Assembly: GCA_021613535.1 (NCBI GenBank)
Contig: CP075492.1
Coordinates: forward strand, 8,680,001 to 8,744,000
DNA from: Adineta vaga
Taxonomy: Eukaryota; Animalia; Rotifera
Length of the DNA stretch: 64,000 bases
Direction of reading: 5' to 3'
Made by a program: the position numbers and the translations under genes. The notes below the pieces were generated by a model. It saw nothing but the letters and a program-made list of their open reading frames with translations, did no database searches and was not told the DNA's origin. Below, one piece after another: positions 31,020 through 46,342 of this stretch; position 1 is the first letter of the stretch, and each line of letters begins with the position of its first letter.

Positions 31020-31330
31020 TTAGGGGCCTCCCACGGATGAAAAAAAAAGACGATTTTCGTCAATAATATAAGTTTTTAGATTTATACATAGCAAGATAGC
31101 TCATCATCTCTACTTTCGAATGCACCATAATTTGCTAGTTTTACGATGGTTTTTGAGTGATTTTCTGAAGATACTTGCATAAATTTTTTTTCCGCTTTAT
31201 TTGACTGTGTCAAAGATTTCTCCGCGATCTTGAATGTTAGAAAGTTCGGGAAGATTTTGAAATGAAGGTGAATTTCAGCGCTACAACCGTTTAAAAAAAT
31301 AAATTTTTGACCTAAGGGGAGTTTAACTTA
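31020..31330. mobile_element. Possible degenerate MITE relic
   Basis: GC-richer ends TAGGGGCCTCCCACGG... and ...TTTTTGACCTAAGGGGAG show weak inverted similarity around a non-coding interior. Confidence 0.3.
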
Positions 31331-31776
31331 GATTATATAATTAGTCCTAGTACATAATCATATGAGCTCAAAGCTACATTAATATGATTTTCATTTGAGT
31401 AAGGTACCCGAAAACCACGTTTCGCAAACTATGATTCATCGAATGATGTTTCTCTTCTCTCACCTGGGGCGGGGGAAATACAGAAGAAAAAATGGAGGCC
31501 ACTACCATTGGTTGTAGATTAGATGCACCATACATGTGTAACTAAATATTCACGAGCTTAGTTTGCATTGATGGTATTTATTTTATTCTGCCATCTTTTT
31601 ACATAGATGTCCTTTTCCGTTTTAGATTAATAATTCGCACTTTTAAAAACATCACAGTGAAAAACCAACGGTGCTAGAATTTATATTTATAATACAAATT
31701 TTCTCTTATTTCCTGAGATGGATTCCTGATTCAAACGACTGATATAAGTCTGTATTTTCATATCCAGGACAATATT

Positions 31777-32984
31777 ATGGACGATTTTGATTATCGTAAG
31801 TGTCAAAATATATAGCAGACTAATACAGCAAGAATATCTACTTCAAAATATTTTCTTTATCCAAACAATTATATTTATTTTTTTAATCTATATAGGTATT
31901 TCAGAAGAAGTTATTGAACGGCCATGTCGCATTTCAGTACGGATTGAGGGTACGATAAATTGTTGAAACTCGATAGATAATTATTTGTACTCTTATAATT
32001 TTACAGGTTTACAAATACCACTGCTTATTGTTGAAGATCGTAACGTCTCTAATACCATAGCTTTCGGACAAGATATTCCATATAATCCCGGTTCCAAGGG
32101 CTTGTTCATTGCTCGTACCGTTGTTCTAATCTTAATTCGTAAGAATTTTTTGAATTTTTTATCGAATGACCCTTGAATTGTAGTGTCAGTTTGCGGTTGG
32201 TCCATGCGCGATTTTCAACCAGTGGTAATAAAGTACACAGAAAAACATGATCAACTTGTTTATGAAACATATAACAGAACTTATGAAGGTACAGAAAATA
32301 TTTACATTTACAATTTTTGATTAATATTATCTATTATAGATCTAATAACGGAAGATGAAAATAATTGTTTTCTTATGAACTCGATGATACTAGATAATCT
32401 CGGTGTTGAGATGAAAGATGACATTGTTCCATCAGATATATACAATGGTAAATAAAGTATTTCAAAATTTTTGTTCTATATTTTGTGATAAAACTATTCA
32501 GATTTATCGATGGACTATACCATTGTAAACGATTACATGACAAAAGTTCCGCATACTTCAACATGTATTCACTCTGATTTATTTGAATGTATCTTTACAA
32601 AATGGTGCTGTGCGAAAGATATGATTGATGGTAATGTTTCCATTGGATTGTTGAAAAGTGCATACTCGACAAGTGATAGTATGTTTAATCAAGTCGATTT
32701 CCTTTTGTTTGTTATATATTTTCAATTTAGAAGCAACTATCGATTCGGAAGGTAGTTTTTGTGATGATGAAAGCAAAGGTTTGTAAAGATTCTTCATATT
32801 TTCATTTGAATTGAAATGAAATACGTACCATAGGTGAACTGGTGTTGGCATATACAGAACTGGGCCACTTTTTCGAACAATATCATCCGGCAATGTCTAT
32901 GTCAGGTAAAAGGAAAAGATCGAGTTTTATATTCATATTTTCTTTATGTATTTAGATTCGTTAATTAGTGAAGGACACGATTAA
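31777..32984 (+). CDS. Orphan gene A, 9 exons, all introns phase 1
   Basis: Exons 31777-31795, 31896-31949, 32007-32138, 32184-32288, 32340-32447, 32502-32678, 32731-32778, 32834-32905, 32956-32984 splice (GT-AG) into one open frame with a hydrophobic segment LFIARTVVLILILSVCGW. Confidence 0.8.
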
Positions 32985-35142
32985 ATTTCGAAGCGAATCT
33001 CAAAGCATTGTTTGATATTATTACTCTTGAAAAGCAATATTTACTCAAATTCTTGTTTTATTTCTTAAATCAGCTCATAATGTATTTTTGAATTAGACTT
33101 GTAATTAAATTAAATTTAATCCGAGTAATAAACACACATACAATCAATATTTTTAACTTTCTCTTTATTTCAATATTAATATTATTCGACTAAATATAAG
33201 TTGAAATATTCTGTTGATCGTATAAGAAAGGACTAATCTTTGCTGCTGAATTGCATTGTGTTATTCATATTCATCTGGACATTGATCTGTGAGATAATAA
33301 TAAACATTGACTTGAAATGATATTGTTAGTAATGTAATTTATCAATAATACAATTCACTTTTACATCTGATAAAACGTAGTATCGTTGATATTTTCTATG
33401 TAAGTGAGTAAACTATTACTGTAGTAAGGAAGAATCTATTGATAACAATAGTATCTTCATTGAAAGAAATGTCTTTTGAGACCTAAATTAAATTTATATA
33501 AACAGAGTAATTCTTTGCATATCTTGGCGTATAGTAAAGTACATAACAAACAGGTTTGATATTAATATAATGACGACAGTGCAATGACGCACGAAAAAAT
33601 GATGTTATCTGACGTAGAATATCGGTTTAAAAAAGGTCATGGATATCATGCTTCGATATGCACTATCACTTTTTCTTGCTGTTCATTGCAAATAATTATT
33701 TTATTATTTACTCGTCTTTGACTGATACAATTTTTTTTGCTATAAAAAGAATGTGTAATGAGTGCGCCCAATGATGATTCTTTGTTTTCTCCCTTATCTC
33801 GTTTTTACTTTTTTTTCTTTCATACATACATACGCTGTTCGAATAAAACATCAAAATAACACTCTTAATTATTATATTAGTAAAGGGGAATAGAGAGAGA
33901 GAGAGAGAGAGGGAGAACATTTTTTTGTCTCGATAGTGATGAAGAAAAATATTTTTCTTCTTGATCGTTAATTTCTTGCTATGCTTGGATTTGGTTATAT
34001 AAGTAATAATAAGAAGAGAAAAGAACGCTTTTGATACATTATTCGATGATTTATTACACTTAACACATATAAAATATATGTATTGTTCTTTCAAAGATGG
34101 TATATTTTATTATAGATGTTTTTGTTTTCATTGAGTTGATCATACTCAAGTAAGAGGGGAAATGCAGTTATTAGGATGTGTGAGTTGACTAATAAGAAAA
34201 AGAAAATATAAAAGACGCAAAAAGGCACACAAACAAGGTGCAAATACATCACCAAACGAGAAAAAAAAGTCATTTTCGTTATCTTTATAATTTTTTTGCA
34301 CATGTTTTTTGAAGAATCTTATATATCACTTTACTTCTGTTGAATTTTTAAGATTATAAAAACTACCTTCGTTAATTAAATCGTTTGGATTTATAAAGAA
34401 GAACATTAAACAATTCCAAGTATGTATTCATTTTCTATTTTTGAATACTTCGACAATCTCTTACGGATTGACTCGATAAGCTTTGAACAATAGGTACTTA
34501 TTGATTAATGATGACTACCTTGAAGGTGGTGTAAAGTTTAATTTTGCCACAAGTACATATCAATAGTAGCTCTTTCTCACAAAGATATGTCGTTTTATGC
34601 AAGACAGAAAATATATCAAAACTGAAGAAACACTACCAAATTCAGACATAAGACTTAGATAATTCAAGAGAATATATAAACGATAGTGAGGGTGTTGTTG
34701 GCGTTCGGAGTATAGAGAATATAAATAATAATGTTATGGGTTTAACCGATGCGTATCCAAGCGTAACGACGATTATAGTGGGGATAGATCACTTGAATGA
34801 TACTATATGTATTGTCAATGTTATTTTTATTCATATTTTTACCTTTTTTTAGTATCAAAGAGCGGTTTGCTTCGTTTCATTGATTTAAAGCGTTCGCTTT
34901 CAATTCAATGTAGAGTAAAGAAAGAAAAATATATTTGAGTTATTCCCTACACTGTACGTATGAATGATACCATATACCTACTTATATCAATTGAAGATTG
35001 TCATGAATAGTTAAAAATTCATCGTCTTTTCATTTCCATTAGATTTTATTTTACATTAATGAAAGAGGTCTTCAAAGTAAATTAAATTCAAACAAAATTA
35101 ACTAAACTGTCATCAGTGGACAGAAAAATCTTGTCCAAAACA

Positions 35143-36800
35143 ATGTCCAGCGAGTATGATAACTCACAAGATTATACCACAGATGAATCATCATCATCGG
35201 AGAACGGTTAGTAAATATTATATCTGGGTTGCAAATTATTATTCAATACTTGTATTTGAATAGAACTGGCGCAAATGGTTGTCGACGAACTATCTGATGA
35301 TTCACAACGAATAACAAGTATTGGTATAGACCAATTAGACATTTAATTTTACTTATACATATTTTCAGATGAACTAGTGAACAGGATTATATTATATGAA
35401 CCAGATCATCACCTTGAAGAAATAACAACAACAACAGCAGCTGTATTTTGGTTTATGTACATACTATTTTGTTTTGGTATTGGTCAGTTCTATTGTTTAT
35501 TTTTGTTCGTACCAATTTTCATTATTATTCATCAACTATTATCATGGAATCATCGATCTGATCAGATATTTCCTGTAGATCAAACAAACAAATCGAAAAT
35601 AGAGTTTTCTCGTAAGATTCGTTTTCCATTACATTTTATTAGATCATTTGGCTTAAATTTTTAGATATTATGGATGCCAATCGAGATGCACAAATTGAAA
35701 GTCGTCTTGCACGTAAATAATACCATAAGCTTTCGAAGAAATTTAATAATCTGATGCATGTCTTTTCTCATCTTTAGATCCAACCGATGAGAGTTTGCCA
35801 TATTCTTCATCTGTCGAGAGTGAGTATATCAAGATATGCCGTAGATGAATTTAATCGTTATCATATTTTTAGTTGTAACTGTCGGGCCATTGAATGTGCA
35901 AAATATGGGAACCGATCCTGAAGACATACACAACGATGCACCTAATATTCTACTTATGAATGCTGCTGGAAATAATGAGAATGGTAACAACGTTCTTTTA
36001 ACTACTCGAACTGGTACGTACTTTGAAAAATCTCACCTTACTACTACTAAGTCTAAATATCATTATTTAGAACTGGATAATCCTATGGTTGATGCTGAAT
36101 ACCATGCAGCAGAAGCTGCAGTCGATAATCCGAATTGTGAGTCAAATGACATATTAGAATATAATGAAAGAAAATTACATTTTTTATTTAAAAGGCAACA
36201 TAAATCCGATCAGTTCAGTTCAATCTCAAGATGACATCAACTCAAGTGAAAGTAGTGACGAAAGTATGTTTATCGAAGTTTCCTTACTCTCGTATTGTCA
36301 TATGTCATGTATTTACTCGTTAATGAATATAAATTTAGACTCTATCATCAGTTCAGAAAGTGGCTTTGATGGAGATGATGAAGGTGGCTCATCCGATGAT
36401 CAAGAACAAACAGCAGGTTTGTTTAATCTTTTTTAATTTTGTCCTCTTGACTAAATTCGACGAATCCTCTTTCATCGGTTCAGGTGAAACGTCGATACTA
36501 ACTAATAATCCTCCAACAAATGTTCGAAAAGACGCTTGTTCTACTCAAACAGATCATGGGTCGGAACAACTTCGAGTGCCAGGTAAAACTGAATATTCTT
36601 TCTTCAATCCGAAATATTTTATTGTAATTGGTGTAGCATCGCCTAATGATGTGAGAGAAATTATGGGAAACGTAACAAATCCACTTGAAGGTAATGAAGA
36701 AATGGTTAGAGAGACCAATCAACCATTGATGATGCCCATACCAAAACCACCGACTGATGTCAGTTCGACCGACAGTGTTGGTGAGGAAATTACTAACTAA
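35143..36800 (+). CDS. Orphan gene B, 11 exons, all introns phase 1; membrane hairpin plus acidic disordered tail
   Basis: Exons 35143-35206, 35264-35323, 35369-35611, 35665-35712, 35778-35819, 35873-36013, 36071-36136, 36195-36263, 36339-36416, 36484-36582, 36637-36800 give a continuous ORF. Confidence 0.82.
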
Positions 36801-38541
36801 ATAGTATGGATGAACGTACATTTAATCCTGATAAACAATTTACTTTTCTTTTACTTAATCCTAACGTTCCATTCTCTGTAACCATCAATTAAAGTGTTTC
36901 TCTCACTCAACAATCAATATGCGTTCACAAAAACCCAATTGACATGACATTTTGAGTATATATGTTGATAGATTAGCGAAGCAATTTTGAGTAAGATAGG
37001 ACCATGTTTGCTTTTTTTATGACGAGAGATTTATAAAAATTGAATTTAAAAAATAGCTAAAGATAGACAAGTTTTGAATTGGATAAATCTTTGTAATAGT
37101 AGGATACGCCATACTTCCTTTTTAGCGGAGGGAAAACATCTCTTTAGATATGCGAACTTCGTAGTAATTTAATGAAATAGAGTTAGATCTCTCTCAGTAA
37201 CAAATTGCTTCAAATAGAAGTAATGAAACATAAATAACTCAAAATGGAGGGTAATGACGATAATTGATTGTTGTGTGAAACAAACTTTTTGAAATCTTTG
37301 GCTTTTAAATTTTTGTCGTAAATTACCCGGTGATATATGGAAACAATCAAGTTAAAGCTGATGTAATGTGATATAACAAATTTTATTCTTTTTTTTTGTA
37401 TTCTCTTTTACTAATTTGTTAAACAAGTATAAAATAATACAATGGTAATGACAAAAACGAGTGATTAATATTTACGTCAGGCATTAATTCTTGAAATCGA
37501 AAGAGTATACAGAAATCATTATTGATAAATACTTGTCACATATTCTATTTACGATTATTAAAACGATGCTTATCGAAGAGATATGTTTATTTGACCTCCT
37601 CAATAAAAGGAAAGTTCATTCATGTTTAAACTCCAAATACCTTAACAAACGATCAAAACTGAATTCAATTACTGCTAAGAGACATTCTCGGTTTTCATTT
37701 TTATTGTCATATACCAAACTACCAATGATAACTGTGCAAAATGTAAGCCACTTACTTCATAATTTATAGCTATTAAGATTTACTGTATAATAAAGAAAAT
37801 GAAAACATGTGAATCTTGCTCTATAACAAAAATTATTTGTTGCTCTTTTTCTTCGAGAGAGAATCGACTTGCATCATTCTCCGGTAGATATAACCTTGAC
37901 AATTTGCTTATAGTTTTCTAAGGATGTTATCAAAACAAAAGAAATGCTTTCAATAATTAGCCTAGTCAGTTAGTAAAACATATGATAGTATCTTAATTAT
38001 ACACTGAAATAAATTGAGGATGAAAGCTAGATGTCACCTGTACAAATCAAGGTCACTTGATAGAAATATGACACTTTTACCGGCTACCTTTTTTATATGA
38101 TGTTGTTTTGAATTGATCCAATAGAAATACTTCAAAGGAACAAAACCTGTAGAAGTCGTTGTTTTGTGACTACTTTCATCTGATTCATTGCATGAAAATA
38201 AACAGAATTGTTTTTCTTTCTTGTTCACATTTGAGAAACATGCTTGACTAACATATAAAAGTAGCAAGGTATCAATGGCAGATGAACGCATTTTCTAATC
38301 AAATCGAAACGAAAGCTTTTCAAAGAGGGAGTGATTTTATTGCTATACAGGTAGACAATATGTACTGAAATTAAGTCAGATATACAAGAAAATCAAGTTG
38401 TCCTTCTTCGAGATTCTTATTTTATGACTATAAAAACTAGTTTCTAATTACTTTGATACCTTTTATTATATAACATATTCTTGAACTCATAATAGTTGAT
38501 AGAGATGTACTATTCATATCATTGTATTTATATATTAATAG

Positions 38542-39881
38542 ATCGTGAATAAAATTTGGCAACACTCAAATCTCCACTGCTGGTAGCTTCTTGTTTTCTT
38601 TTACAGTTTTTGTATTGGGATATATCGCATTAAAGCTTATTCGATCTTATTTTGGTACATCATCAACAAGAACAATAATGCCTAGACGAATTTTTGGTCT
38701 TCGTCTTGTTGTTTACTTGTATTGCTTGCTATTCATACTAATGGGTCTTACTATGAGTCATTCTTTTTTAGTCTATACTTGTATCAATTATTTGCAGTAT
38801 TTATATTATTAGTGTTATATGGACACCTGATCATCAATTTCGTGTTAATTTCGGTAGTGCACAACCTTATCCACAGAATTGTGAGATTTCTTTGTATTCA
38901 AATGTATTCCGTCTATGTTCTACTTCTAGATGAGAATGGTATAAATCGCGAAACTTTGAATACTGTCGGTGAGTATTCTTCTTCATTTTCAGAGCACGAT
39001 ATCCTTATTGATTTATATAGAACCTAGCGATGCATTGTTACTATCATTTCTTCATTATACGTTCTCATCAACGGTTACACGTAAACTATCTTTTGCAATT
39101 CCCTGTCCATCAAAGTACATATTGTTTTTTTTTGCAGTATATTTCGATCAATTTCCCGAAAGTATAGCCGTTGAAGATTCCCAGCCACATACTATGCCTA
39201 CACCAGCTATTCGACTTGCAAGAACTTTCATGGATACAACTCAGCAAACTATACCAAATGTTACAAATATTACTTTTGAAGAAAACGGTAATTATACTTT
39301 CTGAATACTTTTTATGTTTTTCGAAAATATTTTACAGAAGAAAACCAGAATGAAGAAACAGAAAACTCAACAACCCAAGCACCTTTGGAAATACCATGTA
39401 AGTTGAATAATACAATTTATTTGATTAAAATAATGTGCACTTTTTCACAGACATGGACATCTCAGAATCTGCAGCTGATCAGCCGATTCGTGCCAATGCT
39501 GCTAATGACGATCGATTGTACCACACAATTCGTTCACCAATTCCTTCGATCACTAATGATGTTACCGAAAATTATTCAGTTCATCAAATGGTAACAAATG
39601 ATACTTTGGAAAATCAAACAACTATCGGTACTGGAAATTTAATAGAAACCAATGCGACAATAGGTATGAAACAAGAATTTTATTTTAGATATGAATAAAT
39701 CTTCTTCTCTTTCTGAATAGATCCATCTACGTCACCAGAAACAATGGAGCGGGAAAGAAATACAAATATTCCAAATAGTGACGTTCCCGAAAGAATATTA
39801 CAATATACAAGCCTAGCAGTTAATACTGTTCCAAAAGGGCCAACTACAATCGAATCAAACGAAGAAAACATTCAACATTAA
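38542..39881 (+). pseudogene. Orphan gene C (or assembly-error-affected CDS); multi-TM exon with apparent frameshifts, then six phase-1 introns
   Basis: Hydrophobic exon 38542-38880 needs about three single-base corrections. Downstream exons 38930-38968, 39021-39080, 39138-39287, 39338-39397, 39451-39663 and 39721-39881 are open and in frame. 5' exons are unresolved. Confidence 0.65.
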
Positions 39882-40398
39882 ATAATACATGCATATTATA
39901 TTAATAACCGACAATTATGAATATTAGTGAATTATTTAATTATGATGCATCGACAAATCGTTTATTATGACTTTTATCTTCTTTTGACAATGTTAATATG
40001 TACCTTTTTGTTGTACTATACTATTGTTTTCTTATAACAATCACTTACCAAATATGAACATTTTTTGGTCAAATTGATACTGGTTACATTTCTGTCATTT
40101 GTTTTTTTTTAAAGTATATTATTAAATTAAATCGCTGTATTAAAACAATATAACTAAAAAATGTCGATATTTCTTTGTTAAATAGTTGATTCAAGTTAAA
40201 CTTATCTATTTATCTAACCACCTCGAAGGCATACTATTTTTGCTTATTTTGATAACAATAAAATGAGAATTTATCAGTAGACAGAGAAGAGAGTTAATAC
40301 TAAAACAATCTTTTTGAAACTTTTCATATTTATTATCATTATATCCAATCTATATAGTCATTTCTTCGCTGCATTCAACTGGATTTAACAATAGAATA

Positions 40399-41476
40399 AT
40401 GTTGAAAAATATCATCGATACTATTTTATTTTTGACCATAACTATTGATATTATCACATGTGTGCAAGTAACAATAAGTAATGTAGATCCACGTCGAGAT
40501 ATTAATGGAACTATCATGGATATTCACGATGGAAATATGGTACTATACGACGGACTTTATTACTATTATGGTGCAAGTTATGGTCTTTGTAAAGAACCTC
40601 CAGGTCCATCGGGTTGTACAGAATGGCATACAGGAGGATGTGGTTTTCAACTCAATCATAATGTTAGTTTGTATACGTCCACAAATCTAATGAATTGGAC
40701 ATTTCGTAGTTATGCTTTTCAAATGTCAACAATGAAAAATCCAGGAATATTGTTTAGTCCACGTGTTATACGAAATTATCAAACAAAGAAATGGGTTATG
40801 TGGTTTAATTTTCTTCCAGAAACAGGTACCGGTGTTACTCAATCACAATATGCTGTAGCTATTTCAGATACACCACAAGGTCCATTTCAATTGGTGACGG
40901 AAAAAGTCACAACATTAGCATGGGAAAATACAGGAGATTTAAATCTCTTTCAAGATGATAATGGTGATGCTTATATTATTTATACTGCTCATATAGATGG
41001 AAGTATTTATAATCCAAATCATTTAATGTCAGTAGAAAAATTGTCCAGTGATTATCTTAGTTCACTTGGTAAACAATTCAATAGTGGTTATTTTGGACAA
41101 ACTTTTGTAGAGGCACCTACCATGTTCAAACGTAATGGTATCTATTATGCAGTATTTGGTCAATGTTGTTGCTATTGTGCAGAAGGCTCTGCTGTTACAG
41201 TCTATACGTCTTCGTCAACTTGGCCCTTATAAAACAACTATTAGTATTGGTAATGAGGGCCATGCTCAACAATCTAGTGTTTTTAAGTTTCGAACTAGCA
41301 CAGGTGATGGAAATGGATATTTATGGCAAGGAAATCGTTGGCAAAGTTCTCCAGATGGTGCTAAAGGACATGATTTTACCTATTGGTCACCTATCTCTTT
41401 CGATCAAGATGGTAATGTGAAATATATGAACTATACAGCTAGTTTTACTCTTGATGTCATTACTAATAATCAATAG
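40399..41476 (+). CDS. Secreted glycoside hydrolase family 43 (5-bladed beta-propeller), intronless, one frameshift near 41218
   Basis: Signal peptide; DIHDG...YYYYG, SPRVI, AVAISDTPQGPF, GDLNLFQDDNGDAYIIY, EAPTMFKRNGIYY. The expected SSPLGPY motif is split across two frames and continues to HAQQS...WQGNRW...YWSPISF. Confidence 0.85.
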
Positions 41477-41599
41477 ATTTATCCTTGTATTCTATAATTG
41501 CAAAGGATAAGAAAAAACCTATGACATTTATTATTATAGATAAAATTCGAATAGACATCAGAAAGAGTGTTCATTACGTGCCACAAGTCAAACTGTCAG

Positions 41600-42549
41600 T
41601 TATGAATGTCCGATAGGATCTTCATTGACTGGAATGATTCGAACGCGACGGAAAATATATTGATACCAAGATTTAGAAACCAAAGTGAGAAATGCTCTTC
41701 GAAACGTTTTGGATGCACACATAGAAAGATAAAATGGTGCTACACCGATAATATAGACGAGAAATTGTACGAAAAAAGAGATGAATACTTCGATTTCAAT
41801 TCGTTCTCCACTTTTACCCACAACGTAATATGTCACTGCTCCATAGATGAGATTTGCCGAATATGGAATTGATGTGACAATATTTACTGTAACTTCTGCA
41901 ATAAGCATACGCATAAAATGTCTATCTCTCTGTTTAGCACGTGCCTGAGAACCATGCAATTGTTGAAGACCTTGAAGAGTAAGAATATTGGTGACGATCA
42001 TTAATGCTAGTGGTATGATACTAATTGTTATAATTTGATAAATTGAATAGATGAATTTATATATACCCAACAATTCACACACACCTTCTCTAATATCCAT
42101 AAAGAAGGGTACATGCATGACAATTAGAAAATATACGATAGTCATACCAAAAATAAGTTTCATTGCCATTCGAATGGAACTGAATGAACGAATATGAACA
42201 TTTGTTTGCGAGATAATCAATCGATCAATACACGCCAAAACAACCGTATATCGAATACATTGACCAAGAACATGAGCAATATAAAGTCTTGTTTTACAAT
42301 AGAATACGGATTGTACTTGAAGATCAGTATAATTCAATGAATAGAAGAGTGGAAACAGACCCCAGACTAGATGGATCTAGCAAAAATTGAAAGAAAAAGA
42401 AAATAGATTGAACTAGGCGTTTGACGATATCCTGGTCGAGTAAACATAATAATATTGCAAAGACTACCTATGATACCTAATGCAAAGTATATACTTGTTC
42501 CATATTGAATCATCATATTTTGTACCCAAATGAGATTCGTTACTGGCAT
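41600..42549 (-). CDS. Intronless rhodopsin-class (class A) orphan GPCR, one frameshift near 42377
   Basis: Seven hydrophobic segments; GIIGSLCNIIMF (TM1), FYCKTRLY, LACIDR (DRY-like), APFYL...SKTFR (NPxxY-like/helix 8). Two ORFs join after a 1-nt correction (IFA-x-IHLVWGLFPLFYSLNYTD). Confidence 0.82.
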
Positions 42550-42808
42550 TTTCAGAATGACTTCAGATTGAAAATGACGAATGCAAATATATTTCTCACA
42601 GTCTATAACACTAATGATGAATCTACATTTTTTCATGTGGGAAAGAGAAGGTTTTTTATTAAAAAGATTCATTAGGAATTTAAAAAGCACTTATGGAAAC
42701 TTCATCATTTCATTCGGTATCTTTATTCTATATTTGGATGTTACCATATTATTTAATTGACAAATACGAGATGAAAAGGTATATGGCGTACTTTTCAACA
42801 TGAAAATG

Positions 42809-43063
42809 CAGGGGTTTTTCGATAGGAAGGTTGTTGGGGCCACGACACCCCTAGACTTTGAAATTTCTCTCTTTTGCTCGACGTTTCACGAACATTTTTC
42901 AAACGTTTCTTACATATACTTCAAAATTTTATGAAAATTCAAAAAGACCTAAAAAAATATTGAAAAGTTTCCAAGAAAACTCGCATATTTTCTAAATGTT
43001 CGAGAAATTACACAAAATTTATCAATGCTCCCTCCTCAATCTTTTACGCTCCGGGATACCCTG
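42809..43063. mobile_element. Putative hAT-like MITE relic
   Basis: Ends CAGGGGT... and ...ACCCTG form short inverted termini around an AT-rich interior; no intact target-site duplication is visible. Confidence 0.4.
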
Positions 43064-43499
43064 TTTAAACGACTATTTAACTAACGATTTAACAAGATGT
43101 ACTTATCCATGTCCAGGAATTTGAATTCGGCATTTTATTTAATGAGATTTTATTAGAAATAACAAGACGGAACTAGATAAGGCTACAACTAACTGAGCTT
43201 TTAAAGAGTAAGAGATATAAAGAAAAGATTTGTGCTTCCATCTAACAGAACTAATCTTCAACTTTTTCAGATGATACCACTAGACATGCTTCAAACCTAA
43301 ACTGTTTGAGTATGTTATTTACATTTCTGTGTGTTCTAAATACGTAAATCTTCGAAATCTGACGTCCGCTGTACCCACACGTAAATCCAAACTCAGAATG
43401 ACAGTAGAGAGTATTCGAGCTTCATTCGAGTACGAAATGCGATTCGAAACGGGAAGAAAGACGGTTCTGGGATAGCTAATATAGATTTTTAAGAATAAT

Positions 43500-43657
43500 T
43501 GAACGTTTTTAGCTTTTACTATTCATCATTACATGCTCTCTCAGCTGCAAAATGTTTGTTGTACTAAATTCACGCCTAACTCTTCTTCTTCAAAATTTGA
43601 TTCTAATTATCTCAAAAGCTTCAAAGTCAAGATCGTTTTTTTTCGAGGCATCCTGTA
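43500..43657. mobile_element. One end of a Tc1/mariner-type element
   Basis: TTTTTTCGAGGCATCCTG followed by TA (reverse complement TA-CAGGATGCCTCGAAAAAA) resembles TA-CAGGGTG... termini; no partner end was found. Confidence 0.4.
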
Positions 43658-43865
43658 TACGGACCAAACTTCATGATTGAATTCGGATGACAAATATTCT
43701 TAGTTGAGTCTCGTTATTTCTCGTATGGTGTTTCAATTGCTTTTTGTGAGCTACAGTTCGTAAGATCATCGTGTCTCAAAATAACAACTTTAAGTGCGTA
43801 TGTCGAGAAAGGAAAAAATGAAGAAAGAAAAAAAGAAAATTAGTGATCATCCTCATGAACGCTTA

Positions 43866-44509
43866 ATGCTTCGCATCGCATTAAAAAAGACACTCGCGCG
43901 GAAGGTATCTTCCCATTTCATCGGCACGTCCTTAATTCGTCCATTTTTATCGACATACTCTTACTGAATATTTTATAGTCGTCTAAAATAATTTCACTTG
44001 AGAGAAGGAATAAAATAAGAAATGACAATAGCATTAAACTTTTCAAACGTATTATGATATTCAATGGAAAGGCCAGAGAGACACGTCCTATTAGTGGACA
44101 TGACTATTTTTTGTGCATAAGAATAGTCAAACAGAAAACAACAAAATAAAGATCGGTTCGTTGTTTGAGAATGCATATATATATAGACCTGCTTTCTATA
44201 CAATGAATCATTTCGATAAAAATGTTCACAGTCGTGTAAACAACGGAGGGAAAACAATACGTGATTCGAAATGAACGAATTCTTAATTTAATAAACCGAT
44301 ATAATGAAGGTTCATGGTCGCTAGATGCGTATTTCATTAAAACTAGTAAAACAATCGATAAAAAGTCTCAATGATGTTCTTTTTTCTCTTCTTATTTACT
44401 CTTCATAAATAGAGAATGTCGATGAAATGACACTGAACCCGCACGGAACTACATAAATACCTATGCTTATCACATCACATTGCATTTAGTATGCTTCGCA
44501 TCGTATTAA
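43866..44509. repeat. Two direct copies of ATGCTTCGCATCG(C/T)ATTAA (43866-43884 and 44491-44509)
   Basis: 18/19 identical; each contains the hairpin ATGC-TTC-GCAT (GCGAAGC on the minus strand). Confidence 0.7.
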
Positions 44510-44684
44510 ATAAAAATGAATCAGAGTTACCGTATCCATAATTTCAATATCTCTAGTAAATCTGTTTTCAAACTCAATATCGAAACTCACATTCCTCAAC
44601 AGATTGGATTTAGTGTATGTTGAAATATCACGATTGCACTTTTAGGAAATAACGAAGTTTAACGATTACCAGAGTACTCAAAAA

Positions 44685-45198
44685 TCAAGAGTTTATACAT
44701 CTTATATATGCCATGCCGAAGTTTAACTCCGACAAACAAATTTTGTCGAAGTTAATGTTAATGATATAAAATTAGTTTTTGCTGCTGAAAACCCTTCAAA
44801 ACTGTTTTATATTACATTTTCAAAATCATGTTTTACGATTAAAATATTAAAATTCACTTTTAAATATTCTGATCAACATGTATATATTCAAAAACTCGAG
44901 AATACATATATTTTCTTAATCAAAATTATTCATAGATTATAATCCTATTGATGCCGAGAGCAAGTTGTCGCATCCTGTGATCAGTAAGTACGAGTCGGGT
45001 AAACACTTTTCTAAAACTCTGTACATTTGTTAAAACATTTAAAAGTGAATTTTAATATTTTAATCGTGAAAAATGATTTTGAAAATGTAATATAAAACAG
45101 TTTTGAAGGGTTTTTGCAGCAAAAACTAATTTTATATCATTAACATTAACTTCGACAAAATTTGTTTGTTGGAGTTAAACTTCGGCACGGCATAAATA
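44685..45198. mobile_element. Non-autonomous fold-back element (about 500 bp) with about 165-bp inverted arms; Helentron/HINE-like ends
   Basis: 44703-about 44870 is the near-perfect reverse complement of about 45035-45198. An imperfect palindrome AAGAGTTTATACATCTT (44687-44703) lies outside one arm only. Confidence 0.85.
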
Positions 45199-45644
45199 TA
45201 TATACGATTGAACGTGTAGTAAGCTGTCTTCATTTTCTCTTGACAAATATAAGTGCCTCAAAGAATTTTGTAGTTATCTGTATATTTCACACGACTGCAA
45301 TCGAACAAATATATAGAATATACATAGATCTGATTTTAGAAAACAGCTTTGTCTCACTTTTGAGGCATAGCTTCTTGATTTCAATACTTAATTACTTCCG
45401 AATCCGTCACTCATATGACGACAGATGGTTTTATTTTGATACATTCTATCATGCAGACATGTATTTATATGACGTCATTCACATAGGTGAATACACTGAA
45501 TCAAGTATCAAAGAAAGAAAAAAACATCATAACCTAAAAATACATGCATACAAGACTATATAAATTCGGTCTTTTAACTTGCACAACAAGACAGTATACA
45601 ATTTGTATACATCTGATATCGTAATATTTTCTTCCAAGTTGTTC

Positions 45645-46342
45645 ATGACAGTACCAAATGCAAATCCTTTCCTGTTATCAATATCAGCTAATGAAGATAG
45701 ATGTGTACCAACAAGTAATTCTCAACCATTAAATTTATTTCTTCTTACATTTGATAAATTCAATTGAAGTTGTTTGTTTGTTTATGTACATAATACATGA
45801 ATATTCTATTACATTTAGAGAGAACAATTTCAAGACTAACTGGTCAACCAAAAGAAATCAATGGACATATTGATGGTAAGTTAAAATGATTCCATTTGAT
45901 ATTTAAGAACGTCTTTTCTTTTTTTTAAAGAGCCGTGGACTCCTAATCGATCACTTGAGCATAGAAGATCGAATATAAATCAAAACGAGATTGAAAATCT
46001 ACTGTTTTTACATTCATCGTCAGTTCAAAGTAAGATTGTTGATACTTGATTCCGAAGTCTATATTGTGATTTGTTATCATATATTTAGTACAATATGAAC
46101 TGTTCAGTTCTTCTTTACAAGATTATGAAAGTCAGATCAGTCATCTTGTTTACCAAGCAACTGAAACTAGTATTAGTCTTCCAAGTATGTTATTTTCCTG
46201 TTGAAGTCAAAGTATATCTCATTTTTTTTCTATTTTAGTTATTCAAACTGTTAAACGATCAATTTCAGCAGTAGATGCGCAATCATGCAATGATCAATCA
46301 ATAATGAGAAAAAGCAAACGTCATCGAACAACTTCTTCATAA
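45645..46342 (+). CDS. Orphan gene D, 5 exons, all introns phase 1; basic C-terminus (RKSKRHR)
   Basis: Exons 45645-45714, 45819-45875, 45931-46029, 46089-46184 and 46239-46342 splice into one ORF. Confidence 0.72.

Follow-up and report, generated by a model that had tools for sequence, protein, structure and literature searches.

Why should several neighbouring genes without known relatives be split almost exclusively by phase-1 introns, and does such an architecture serve to generate protein variants? The question is raised by four genes, A, B, C and D, which lie on the same (+) strand in a stretch of 64,000 nucleotides of the Adineta vaga genome (C3:8680001-8744000; the window). The original prediction took this cluster for a micro-exon-gene (MEG)-like system. 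The near-exclusive phase-1 splitting of several neighbouring orphan genes is a real observation, while the MEG-like reading of cluster A-D is not supported. The phase-1 pattern looks like a fit to the known build of floppy, fast-evolving proteins, not to a variant generator, and the locus reveals no new mechanism.

The RNA evidence consists of spliced contigs from four runs of four studies and covers A and B. Splice sites were also scored in a way that ignored the reading frame, and phases were then read from the open frame of the spliced product. The two RNA-based genes are built as follows:

31658..33151, + strand: gene A; transcript starts at 31658 or earlier; spliced contigs in runs X1, X5, X9 and X6
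31777-32984, + strand: coding sequence of gene A, 9 exons, 247 aa
31777-31795, 31896-31949, 32007-32138, 32184-32288, 32340-32447, + strand: gene A exons 1-5 (RNA)
32502-32678, 32731-32778, 32834-32905, 32956-32984, + strand: gene A exons 6-9 (RNA)
34400..34419, + strand: 5' non-coding exon of gene B; 3' end fixed by RNA, 5' end approximate
35043..37299, + strand: gene B; 3' UTR covered by contigs to at least 37299
35143-36800, + strand: coding sequence of gene B (ATG 35143, stop 36800), 11 coding exons, 355 aa
35206/35264, 35317/35369, 35611/35665, 35712/35778, 35819/35873, + strand: gene B exon ends/starts 1-5 (RNA)
36013/36071, 36136/36195, 36263/36339, 36416/36484, 36582/36637, + strand: gene B exon ends/starts 6-10 (RNA)

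Every coding junction of A and B is confirmed by RNA and is GT..AG, and the predicted phase-1 counts (8/8 in A, 10/10 in B) hold throughout; the spliced product of A has one open frame only, in which all eight phases are read. The 5' exon of B is joined from 34419 to 35043 across a 623-nt GT..AG intron (joint in X1 and X9). One of the exon sizes predicted for B had to be corrected, with the phases unchanged: the second exon measures 54 nt by RNA (donor at 35318), not 60. The resulting B model is identical to the public NCBI hypothetical protein I4U23_013502 (355 aa). C and D are models based on splice scoring and an open frame, with the following features:

38505..39882, + strand: gene C (predicted only)
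38881-38929, 38969-39020, 39081-39137, 39288-39337, 39398-39450, 39664-39720, + strand: strong phase-1 introns of gene C (frame-blind splice scores)
45645..46342, + strand: gene D (predicted only), 5 exons, 141 aa
45876-45930, 46030-46088, 46185-46238, + strand: strong phase-1 introns of gene D (frame-blind splice scores)

The 5' part of C has two candidate starts, ATG 38505 or 38678. Since the C exon at 38798-38880 holds no ATG, an upstream intron is needed, for which 38719-38797 (phase 2) or 38711-38771 (phase 0) are the best candidates. The first intron originally drawn for C (38757-38929, 173 nt) has a splice score of 1.7, versus 7.7-14.6 for RNA-confirmed introns, and a C model with one extra phase-2 or phase-0 intron is likelier than one with this 173-nt intron. 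The first intron of D (45715-45818, 104 nt) is weak, with a score of 4.3, and would be in phase 1 if real. In all, 27 introns (8 in A, 10 in B, six in C and three in D) are in phase 1, as against 28/28 originally counted; the first intron originally drawn for C is doubtful and that of D weak. Frame-blind scoring recovers 8/8 introns of A and 9/10 of B, together with nine further strong phase-1 introns in C and D. When spliced, each of the four genes has only one open frame, the other two frames containing 5-41 stops.

This excess has to be judged against the rest of the genome. Phases 0/1/2 number 101/93/47 in 264 kb of genome sequence (strict set defined by ORF flanks, zero decoy matches), with a phase-1 share of 0.33-0.39; phases are mixed. 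The remaining genes of the window have mixed phases too, as originally stated for the neighbouring conserved genes. Elsewhere, 1-1 internal exons amount to about 10% (46/475 predicted), and only one other run of 5 or more phase-1 introns is predicted in the 200 kb sampled. A custom exon-chaining gene finder was used for phase tallies only, and only tallies stable across settings were relied on; when retrained it fuses neighbouring genes, and with a high intron penalty A and B are lost. Under independence and the background share, 18/18 phase-1 introns in A and B have a probability of about 4e-8, or about 9e-7 if the proto-splice bias of these genes (0.46) is allowed for. The phase-1 excess in A and B is far beyond chance.

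The internal exons are symmetric, as predicted. All 16 in A and B are multiples of three by RNA, so that loss or gain of any one keeps the frame, and the same is predicted for five exons in the tail of C and three in D. Successive exons of class 1-1 (phase-1/phase-1) number 7 in A and 9 in B (RNA), with 5 predicted in C and 2-3 in D. Exons measure 39-243 nt and introns 45-100 nt; the 21 internal exons of A, B and the C tail comprise 12 of 39-78 nt and 9 of 99-243 nt, all of them longer than 36 nt. Intron lengths were also considered as multiples of three, an idea rejected because the lengths are mixed.

All four proteins are rich in polar residues (S+T+N+Q 21-37%), with 16-18% D+E in A-C and 10% in D. 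From composition and hydropathy, A contains one hydrophobic segment (about residues 53-77), 8 Cys and 17% D+E. For B, AlphaFold2 on the single sequence predicts a helical membrane hairpin (helices 52-106, pLDDT 80-85), after which pLDDT stays below 50 for residues 110-355, with no secondary structure; the acidic tail, of roughly 250 residues, is predicted to be disordered. The N-termini of A and B are acidic and hydrophilic, their first hydrophobic segments lying near residue 53 and residue 58, respectively, and by hydropathy only they have no N-terminal signal peptide. In C the tail, acidic and polar, has several N-x-T/S sites; the D protein is polar without a hydrophobic segment. Judging by composition, the tails of A, C and D may be disordered as well.

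Relatives of these proteins are hard to find. Full-length B, searched against 1.84 and 5.8 billion proteins, matches itself only (the query being the stored public protein); its Pfam search gave no match and its ESM Atlas features no usable match. B exon 3 against the 5.8 billion proteins returned nothing, in a search restricted to proteins near the query length and hence uninformative. By these sequence comparisons, gene B is a true orphan. Full-length searching was applied to B only, and single exons served as queries for A, C and D: Pfam gave no match for four exons of A or three of C, and no real match for ten exons of the cluster genes. Allelic codon differences between the haplotypes comprise 14 non-synonymous and 6 synonymous changes (pN/pS about 0.6), which, with the absence of B relatives among public proteins, bears out the predicted fast evolution.

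We consider it on balance probable that these are lineage-specific genes with disordered acidic polar tails, in which the same-phase 1-1 exon build is an evolutionary footprint and splicing is constitutive. A, B and C would be small membrane-anchored proteins and D a soluble one, all lineage-specific to Adineta vaga, and each would end in a long, acidic, polar and probably intrinsically disordered tail. Their coding regions would have been put together almost wholly from class 1-1 exons: the genes may have grown by addition or duplication of symmetric exons, tolerated by the disordered tail, with G-initial codons (Asp, Glu, Gly, Ala) favouring phase-1 splice sites, and later rapid sequence change would have wiped out similarity among exons and among neighbouring genes. 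The frame-neutral design would matter on an evolutionary timescale and not for regulated isoforms, the exons being spliced constitutively. We infer both the addition or duplication of exons as the source of these genes and any shared ancestry within the cluster. Some observations weigh against this explanation: exon duplication leaves no trace here, the composition bias of 0.46 alone cannot yield 18/18, and the disorder prediction comes from a single sequence and concerns B only.

The original prediction saw in the same architecture a MEG-like means of diversification, whereby symmetric exons are skipped combinatorially or exchanged between alleles or genes to give many protein variants. Any internal exon of A or B could indeed be dropped in frame, the proteins are fast-evolving orphans, and contigs, in which 15 of 20 joints are listed, hide rare isoforms. 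However, all 15 listed joints are constitutive, and every exon of A and B occurs in contigs from four studies (X6 records 15-17, X9 records 18-19 and X1 record 7); no exon skipping in A and B was seen among these joints or in the contigs of the four runs, which drop rare variants. Comparing exon number between alleles, as had been proposed, gave the same exon set in both haplotypes, with no gain or loss in the A and B contigs. Swapping or duplication of exons finds no more support, there being no exon-exon, intron-intron or gene-gene similarity: Smith-Waterman scores between exons average 15.83, versus 15.89 +- 0.18 when shuffled, and neither blastp-short between exons nor blastn between introns gave a signal. 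A DNA search of the genome for a paralogue or ohnologous copy of 31600-39950 (A-C) returned that region itself only, and protein searches with one exon each of B (exon 3) and C (exon 6, 39451-39663) found the query exons only, plus one E=0.15 match at C2:483386. The sizes of exons and introns and the absent signal peptide are also unlike MEGs, and we regard this reading as very unlikely. On evidence that covers the contigs of A and B and two haplotypes, we also hold it improbable that the locus acts as a nursery where new genes keep arising, with membrane proteins that look unrelated being assembled and reshaped time and again out of 1-1 exons; real variation would then come from exons gained, lost or exchanged among Adineta lineages, or from low-level skipping under a stress such as desiccation. 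Introner-like similarity among introns was looked for separately, and none was found.

Alternatively, introns may have been gained one by one at proto-splice sites, steered to phase 1 by acidic G-initial codons, with no exon addition and with clustering as a compositional coincidence. In A, B and D the proto-splice potential is highest for phase 1 (0.40-0.46 weighted; 45-46% for these coding sequences), strong proto-splice sites fall in phase 1 in 42/72 cases in A and 57/103 in B, 10/18 RNA-confirmed split codons start with G, and the exons lack similarity; but even at 0.58 per intron the probability of 18/18 is about 5e-5, and a run of five phase-1 introns is predicted just once in the 200 kb elsewhere, which leaves this course of events a modest chance. 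A small chance may be granted to an origin of A, B, C and perhaps D by ancient tandem duplication of a single ancestor with phase-1 introns only; the 27 introns would then represent few independent events, and the cluster one diverged family. The genes adjoin on the same strand and have a like build (short hydrophilic N-terminus, hydrophobic segment in exons 2-4, acidic polar tail), exon 2 is 54 nt long in both A and B, and weak top scores link the last exon of B with the tail exons of C (best pair B11/C6, p=0.0045 among 406 pairs). Yet pairwise BLASTP among the A-D proteins gave nothing better than E=0.07, the genes do not correspond in the number or size of their exons, and between C and D lie two other genes, one GH43 and one receptor-like. 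Tandem duplication is compatible with the explanation that we favour, not opposed to it. Against the favoured explanation also stands the presence of three or four such genes side by side, which only a shared origin, putative here, would explain. Finally, the pattern is hardly credible as an artefact of hand-built gene models, a reading already refuted for A and B: the models were made for frame continuity, with one wrong exon size in B and a doubtful first intron in C, but the 18/18 introns of A and B are fixed by RNA and nine others by frame-blind scoring, stops fill the alternative frames, and the public annotation of B agrees.

With the footprint explanation preferred, the locus is a clean, RNA-verified case outside vertebrates of disordered, fast-evolving proteins encoded by same-phase exon runs, and such genes are here orphans without detectable relatives. 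Exon phase may therefore record how such a gene was constructed after sequence similarity is gone. This record could serve genome-wide tracing of orphan-gene origin in bdelloid rotifers.

Three known systems invite comparison. Schistosome MEGs have exons of 6-81 bp, mostly 15 bp, and introns of 100-5000 bp, and their proteins carry a signal peptide and come in many spliced isoforms (PMC10526429). A-D share with them lineage specificity, fast evolution, internal exons that are multiples of three, and exon loss in frame. They differ in that exons are of 39-243 nt and introns of 45-100 nt, the coding region does not consist mostly of micro-exons, A and B lack a signal peptide and no skipped isoform was seen in the contigs, which may hide rare forms; nor is there sequence kinship with MEG families, B matching itself only and A, C and D being judged by exon-wise Pfam searches. 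Class 1-1 modules spread by exon shuffling predominate in metazoan extracellular and transmembrane proteins, for which a proto-splice-site explanation has been given (Patthy 2021, PMC8001218). Common to these modules and A-D are phase-1-only introns on a phase-0-rich background, membrane-associated proteins and a proto-splice-site bias in the same direction. Patthy's modules, however, are folded, recognisable domains common to many genes, whereas the exons of A-D belong to no Pfam family and, within the searches made, have no other counterpart in the genome or among public proteins.

A third parallel is offered by genes for intrinsically disordered proteins (IDPs) made of successive same-phase symmetric exons, such as calpastatin and the SIBLING genes (Schad, Kalmar and Tompa 2013, PMC3632108). 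The human-genome literature serves here as an analogy for rotifer genes. A-D differ from that class in having no residual exon-duplication signal, which is frequent but not obligatory in it, in being species-restricted orphans of a bdelloid rotifer with introns of 45-100 nt, and in that their 1-1 exons encode the membrane anchor too. What they share with it are long runs of symmetric exons in one phase, polar tails predicted to be disordered, and modular, frame-neutral evolution.

The exon structures of genes A (31777-32984, 247 aa) and B (35143-36800, 355 aa), two of four candidate orphan genes on the + strand, were compared with spliced RNA contigs (4 runs from 4 studies) aligned over window positions 31300-37299, with repeats at 33882-33926 left out; the earlier gene models were reconstructed from the exon sizes given for them. 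A (GA)n microsatellite lies between A and B, at 33895-33917. All coding introns (8/8 in A, 10/10 in B) were either found as a GT..AG joint or spanned by a contig of a length fitting the exons between, some joints of A being inferred from a second joint table, one loose contig end and contig pieces. Each spliced product has a single open frame, with 16-41 stops in the other frames, and in the open frame 18/18 introns are in phase 1, so that the original prediction is borne out for both genes. The exception in detail is exon 2 of B, proposed as 60 nt, which by RNA ends at 35317 and measures 54 nt; the longer version would need a donor 6 bases downstream, with the phase unchanged. B also has an additional non-coding 5' exon, ending at 34419 and followed by a 623-nt intron.

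The RNA contigs extend at least 500 nt beyond the stop codon of B (window 36635-37299) and differ there from the assembly by several substitutions and by 14 nt inserted after 37170, which suggests a long 3' UTR and a haplotype or strain other than the assembled one. At 31876 and 35441, contigs in all four RNA runs match up to that point and then continue with 76-255 letters foreign to the locus; the departure at 35441 falls in an ACA/GCA codon repeat. These contigs are probably transcripts of other genes with a common short repeat.

For genes C (38505-39882) and D (45645-46342), GT..AG pairs were scored without regard to reading frame, using splice-site matrices trained on predicted introns of this genome; the window has 31% G+C and introns of about 50 nt. 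The method is informative, since it finds all 8 introns of A and 9 of the 10 of B. In C it predicts six strong introns, scoring 8.2-13.9, and in D three, scoring 13.5-16.6; the predicted spliced products have one open frame each, in which 9/9 of these introns are in phase 1. Acceptor and donor of the C exon at 38798-38880 are both good and the intron downstream of it, at 49 nt, is typical, but the exon lacks an ATG and therefore requires an intron upstream, for which 38719-38797 (phase 2) or 38711-38771 (phase 0) would be workable. What was apparently modelled instead, a 173-nt intron at 38757-38929 bypassing this exon, reaches a score of 1.7, where introns confirmed by RNA range from 7.7 to 14.6. 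C is therefore probably in phase 1 at all introns but one, not at 6/6 as proposed; of the four introns claimed for D, three are strong and the first (104 nt, score 4.3) is doubtful. A strong candidate intron of C, 39081-39137, was read through by an exon-chaining predictor; as it is 57 nt long and open in frame, its retention would keep the reading frame too.

Three features lie between C and D.

40399-41476, + strand, glycoside hydrolase family 43 (GH43) gene, apparently intronless (Pfam PF04616, E=1.9e-14)
41600-42549, - strand, multi-pass membrane protein gene of two exons, with a weak 7tm_1 (rhodopsin-family receptor) match under the Pfam cut-off (E=8e-5)
44703-44868 and 45034-45198, large foldback whose two arms, inverted repeats each about 166 nt long, are 91-96% complementary and separated by 165 nt

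The supposed cluster is thus interrupted by the two-exon membrane gene. GH43 genes are of a kind known to reach bdelloids horizontally. In this one the frame is broken near 41215-41235: a stop ends one frame at 41232, and it is the +1 frame that encodes the family-like C-terminal part, up to 41476. Either a 1-nt indel, in a pseudogene or through an assembly error, accounts for the break, or there is an odd 58-nt intron here, as proposed by the predictor. The inverted repeat, possibly a foldback or MITE-like element, occupies a gene-poor stretch upstream of D.

The phase-1 excess is real and local. In a background of 264 kb (200 kb from two other chromosomes plus the window, with our own predictor), phases 0/1/2 are mixed, at 101/93/47, among 241 introns chosen strictly by requiring 30 or more open, coding-like codons on each side; reversed sequence gave zero matches through the same filter. 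The rough exon-chaining predictor gave 254/223/135, and with it the window's other genes show mixed phases, as originally described. Symmetric exons between two phase-1 introns (1-1 exons) make up 46/475 (10%) of predicted internal exons outside the locus, as expected from independent phases, and the 200 kb sampled elsewhere yielded a single further predicted run of five phase-1 introns. If each intron had a 0.39 chance of being in phase 1, 18/18 would occur with a probability of about 4e-8. The genes' acidic make-up lifts their phase-1 proto-splice potential to 0.45-0.46, at which the figure is still about 9e-7.

The proposal that this pattern serves a micro-exon-gene-like diversification system fared poorly. 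Among the joints listed (15 of 20), 15/15 are constitutive, in contig evidence from which rare isoforms could escape, and the small exons of 54, 48, 42 and 72 nt are present in contigs from all four studies. Pairwise comparison of A, B, C and D revealed no likeness (best BLASTP E-value 0.07), nor were exon peptides similar to one another or introns to one another. When 29 exon peptides were compared all against all by Smith-Waterman alignment, they scored no differently from shuffled versions (mean 15.83 vs 15.89 +- 0.18), the best pair having p=0.0045 among 406 pairs. A search of the genome (100.8 Mb, six pieces), with A-C as DNA and one exon each of B and C as protein, turned up no paralogue. 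Exon turnover between alleles did not appear either: the second haplotype in the RNA contigs is 1-5% different and has the same exons. The listed haplotype differences comprise 14 non-synonymous and 6 synonymous codons, with a pN/pS of about 0.63, indistinguishable from neutrality.

The B model is identical at every residue to a public protein titled 'hypothetical protein I4U23_013502 [Adineta vaga]'. This sequence matched itself alone at full length among 5.8 billion proteins, as did its exon 3 (80 residues) among 1.84 billion representative proteins; it has no Pfam family, and ESM Atlas features brought up no similar protein. Single-sequence AlphaFold2 models residues 52-106 with confidence as a helical hairpin (pLDDT 80-85) and residues 110-355 as unstructured (pLDDT <50), a disorder prediction that concerns B alone. 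The orphan label of A, C and D rests on finding no Pfam family for exons searched singly and no relative in the genome itself. A carries eight cysteines and a single hydrophobic segment; in C, hydrophobic exons are predicted upstream of a tail that bears several N-x-T/S sites, and in D no hydrophobic segment is predicted. All four are polar, and A, B and C are acidic (D+E 16-18%). We conclude, with moderate confidence, that these are lineage-specific proteins, A-C membrane-anchored and with tails probably disordered, whose coding regions would have been built by the addition of 1-1 exons, all spliced in constitutively, while rapid sequence change would have erased all internal similarity. It is plausible that old tandem duplication brought three or four such genes together.

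In schistosome micro-exon genes the exons measure 6-81 bp, most of them 15 bp, and the introns 100-5000 bp; the products carry a signal peptide and occur in many isoforms (PMC10526429). Exon symmetry is common to both systems, whereas the small exons, long introns, signal peptide and many isoforms are absent or were not seen here. In the human genome, the regions encoded by runs of at least three same-phase symmetric exons are those with the highest disorder, and genes of mostly disordered proteins tend toward symmetric exons, often via internal duplication (PMC3632108). Class 1-1 modules dominate in metazoan extracellular and membrane proteins, with proto-splice-site bias offered as a cause (PMC8001218). 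By analogy, the phase-1 pattern of A-D matches a regularity already known.
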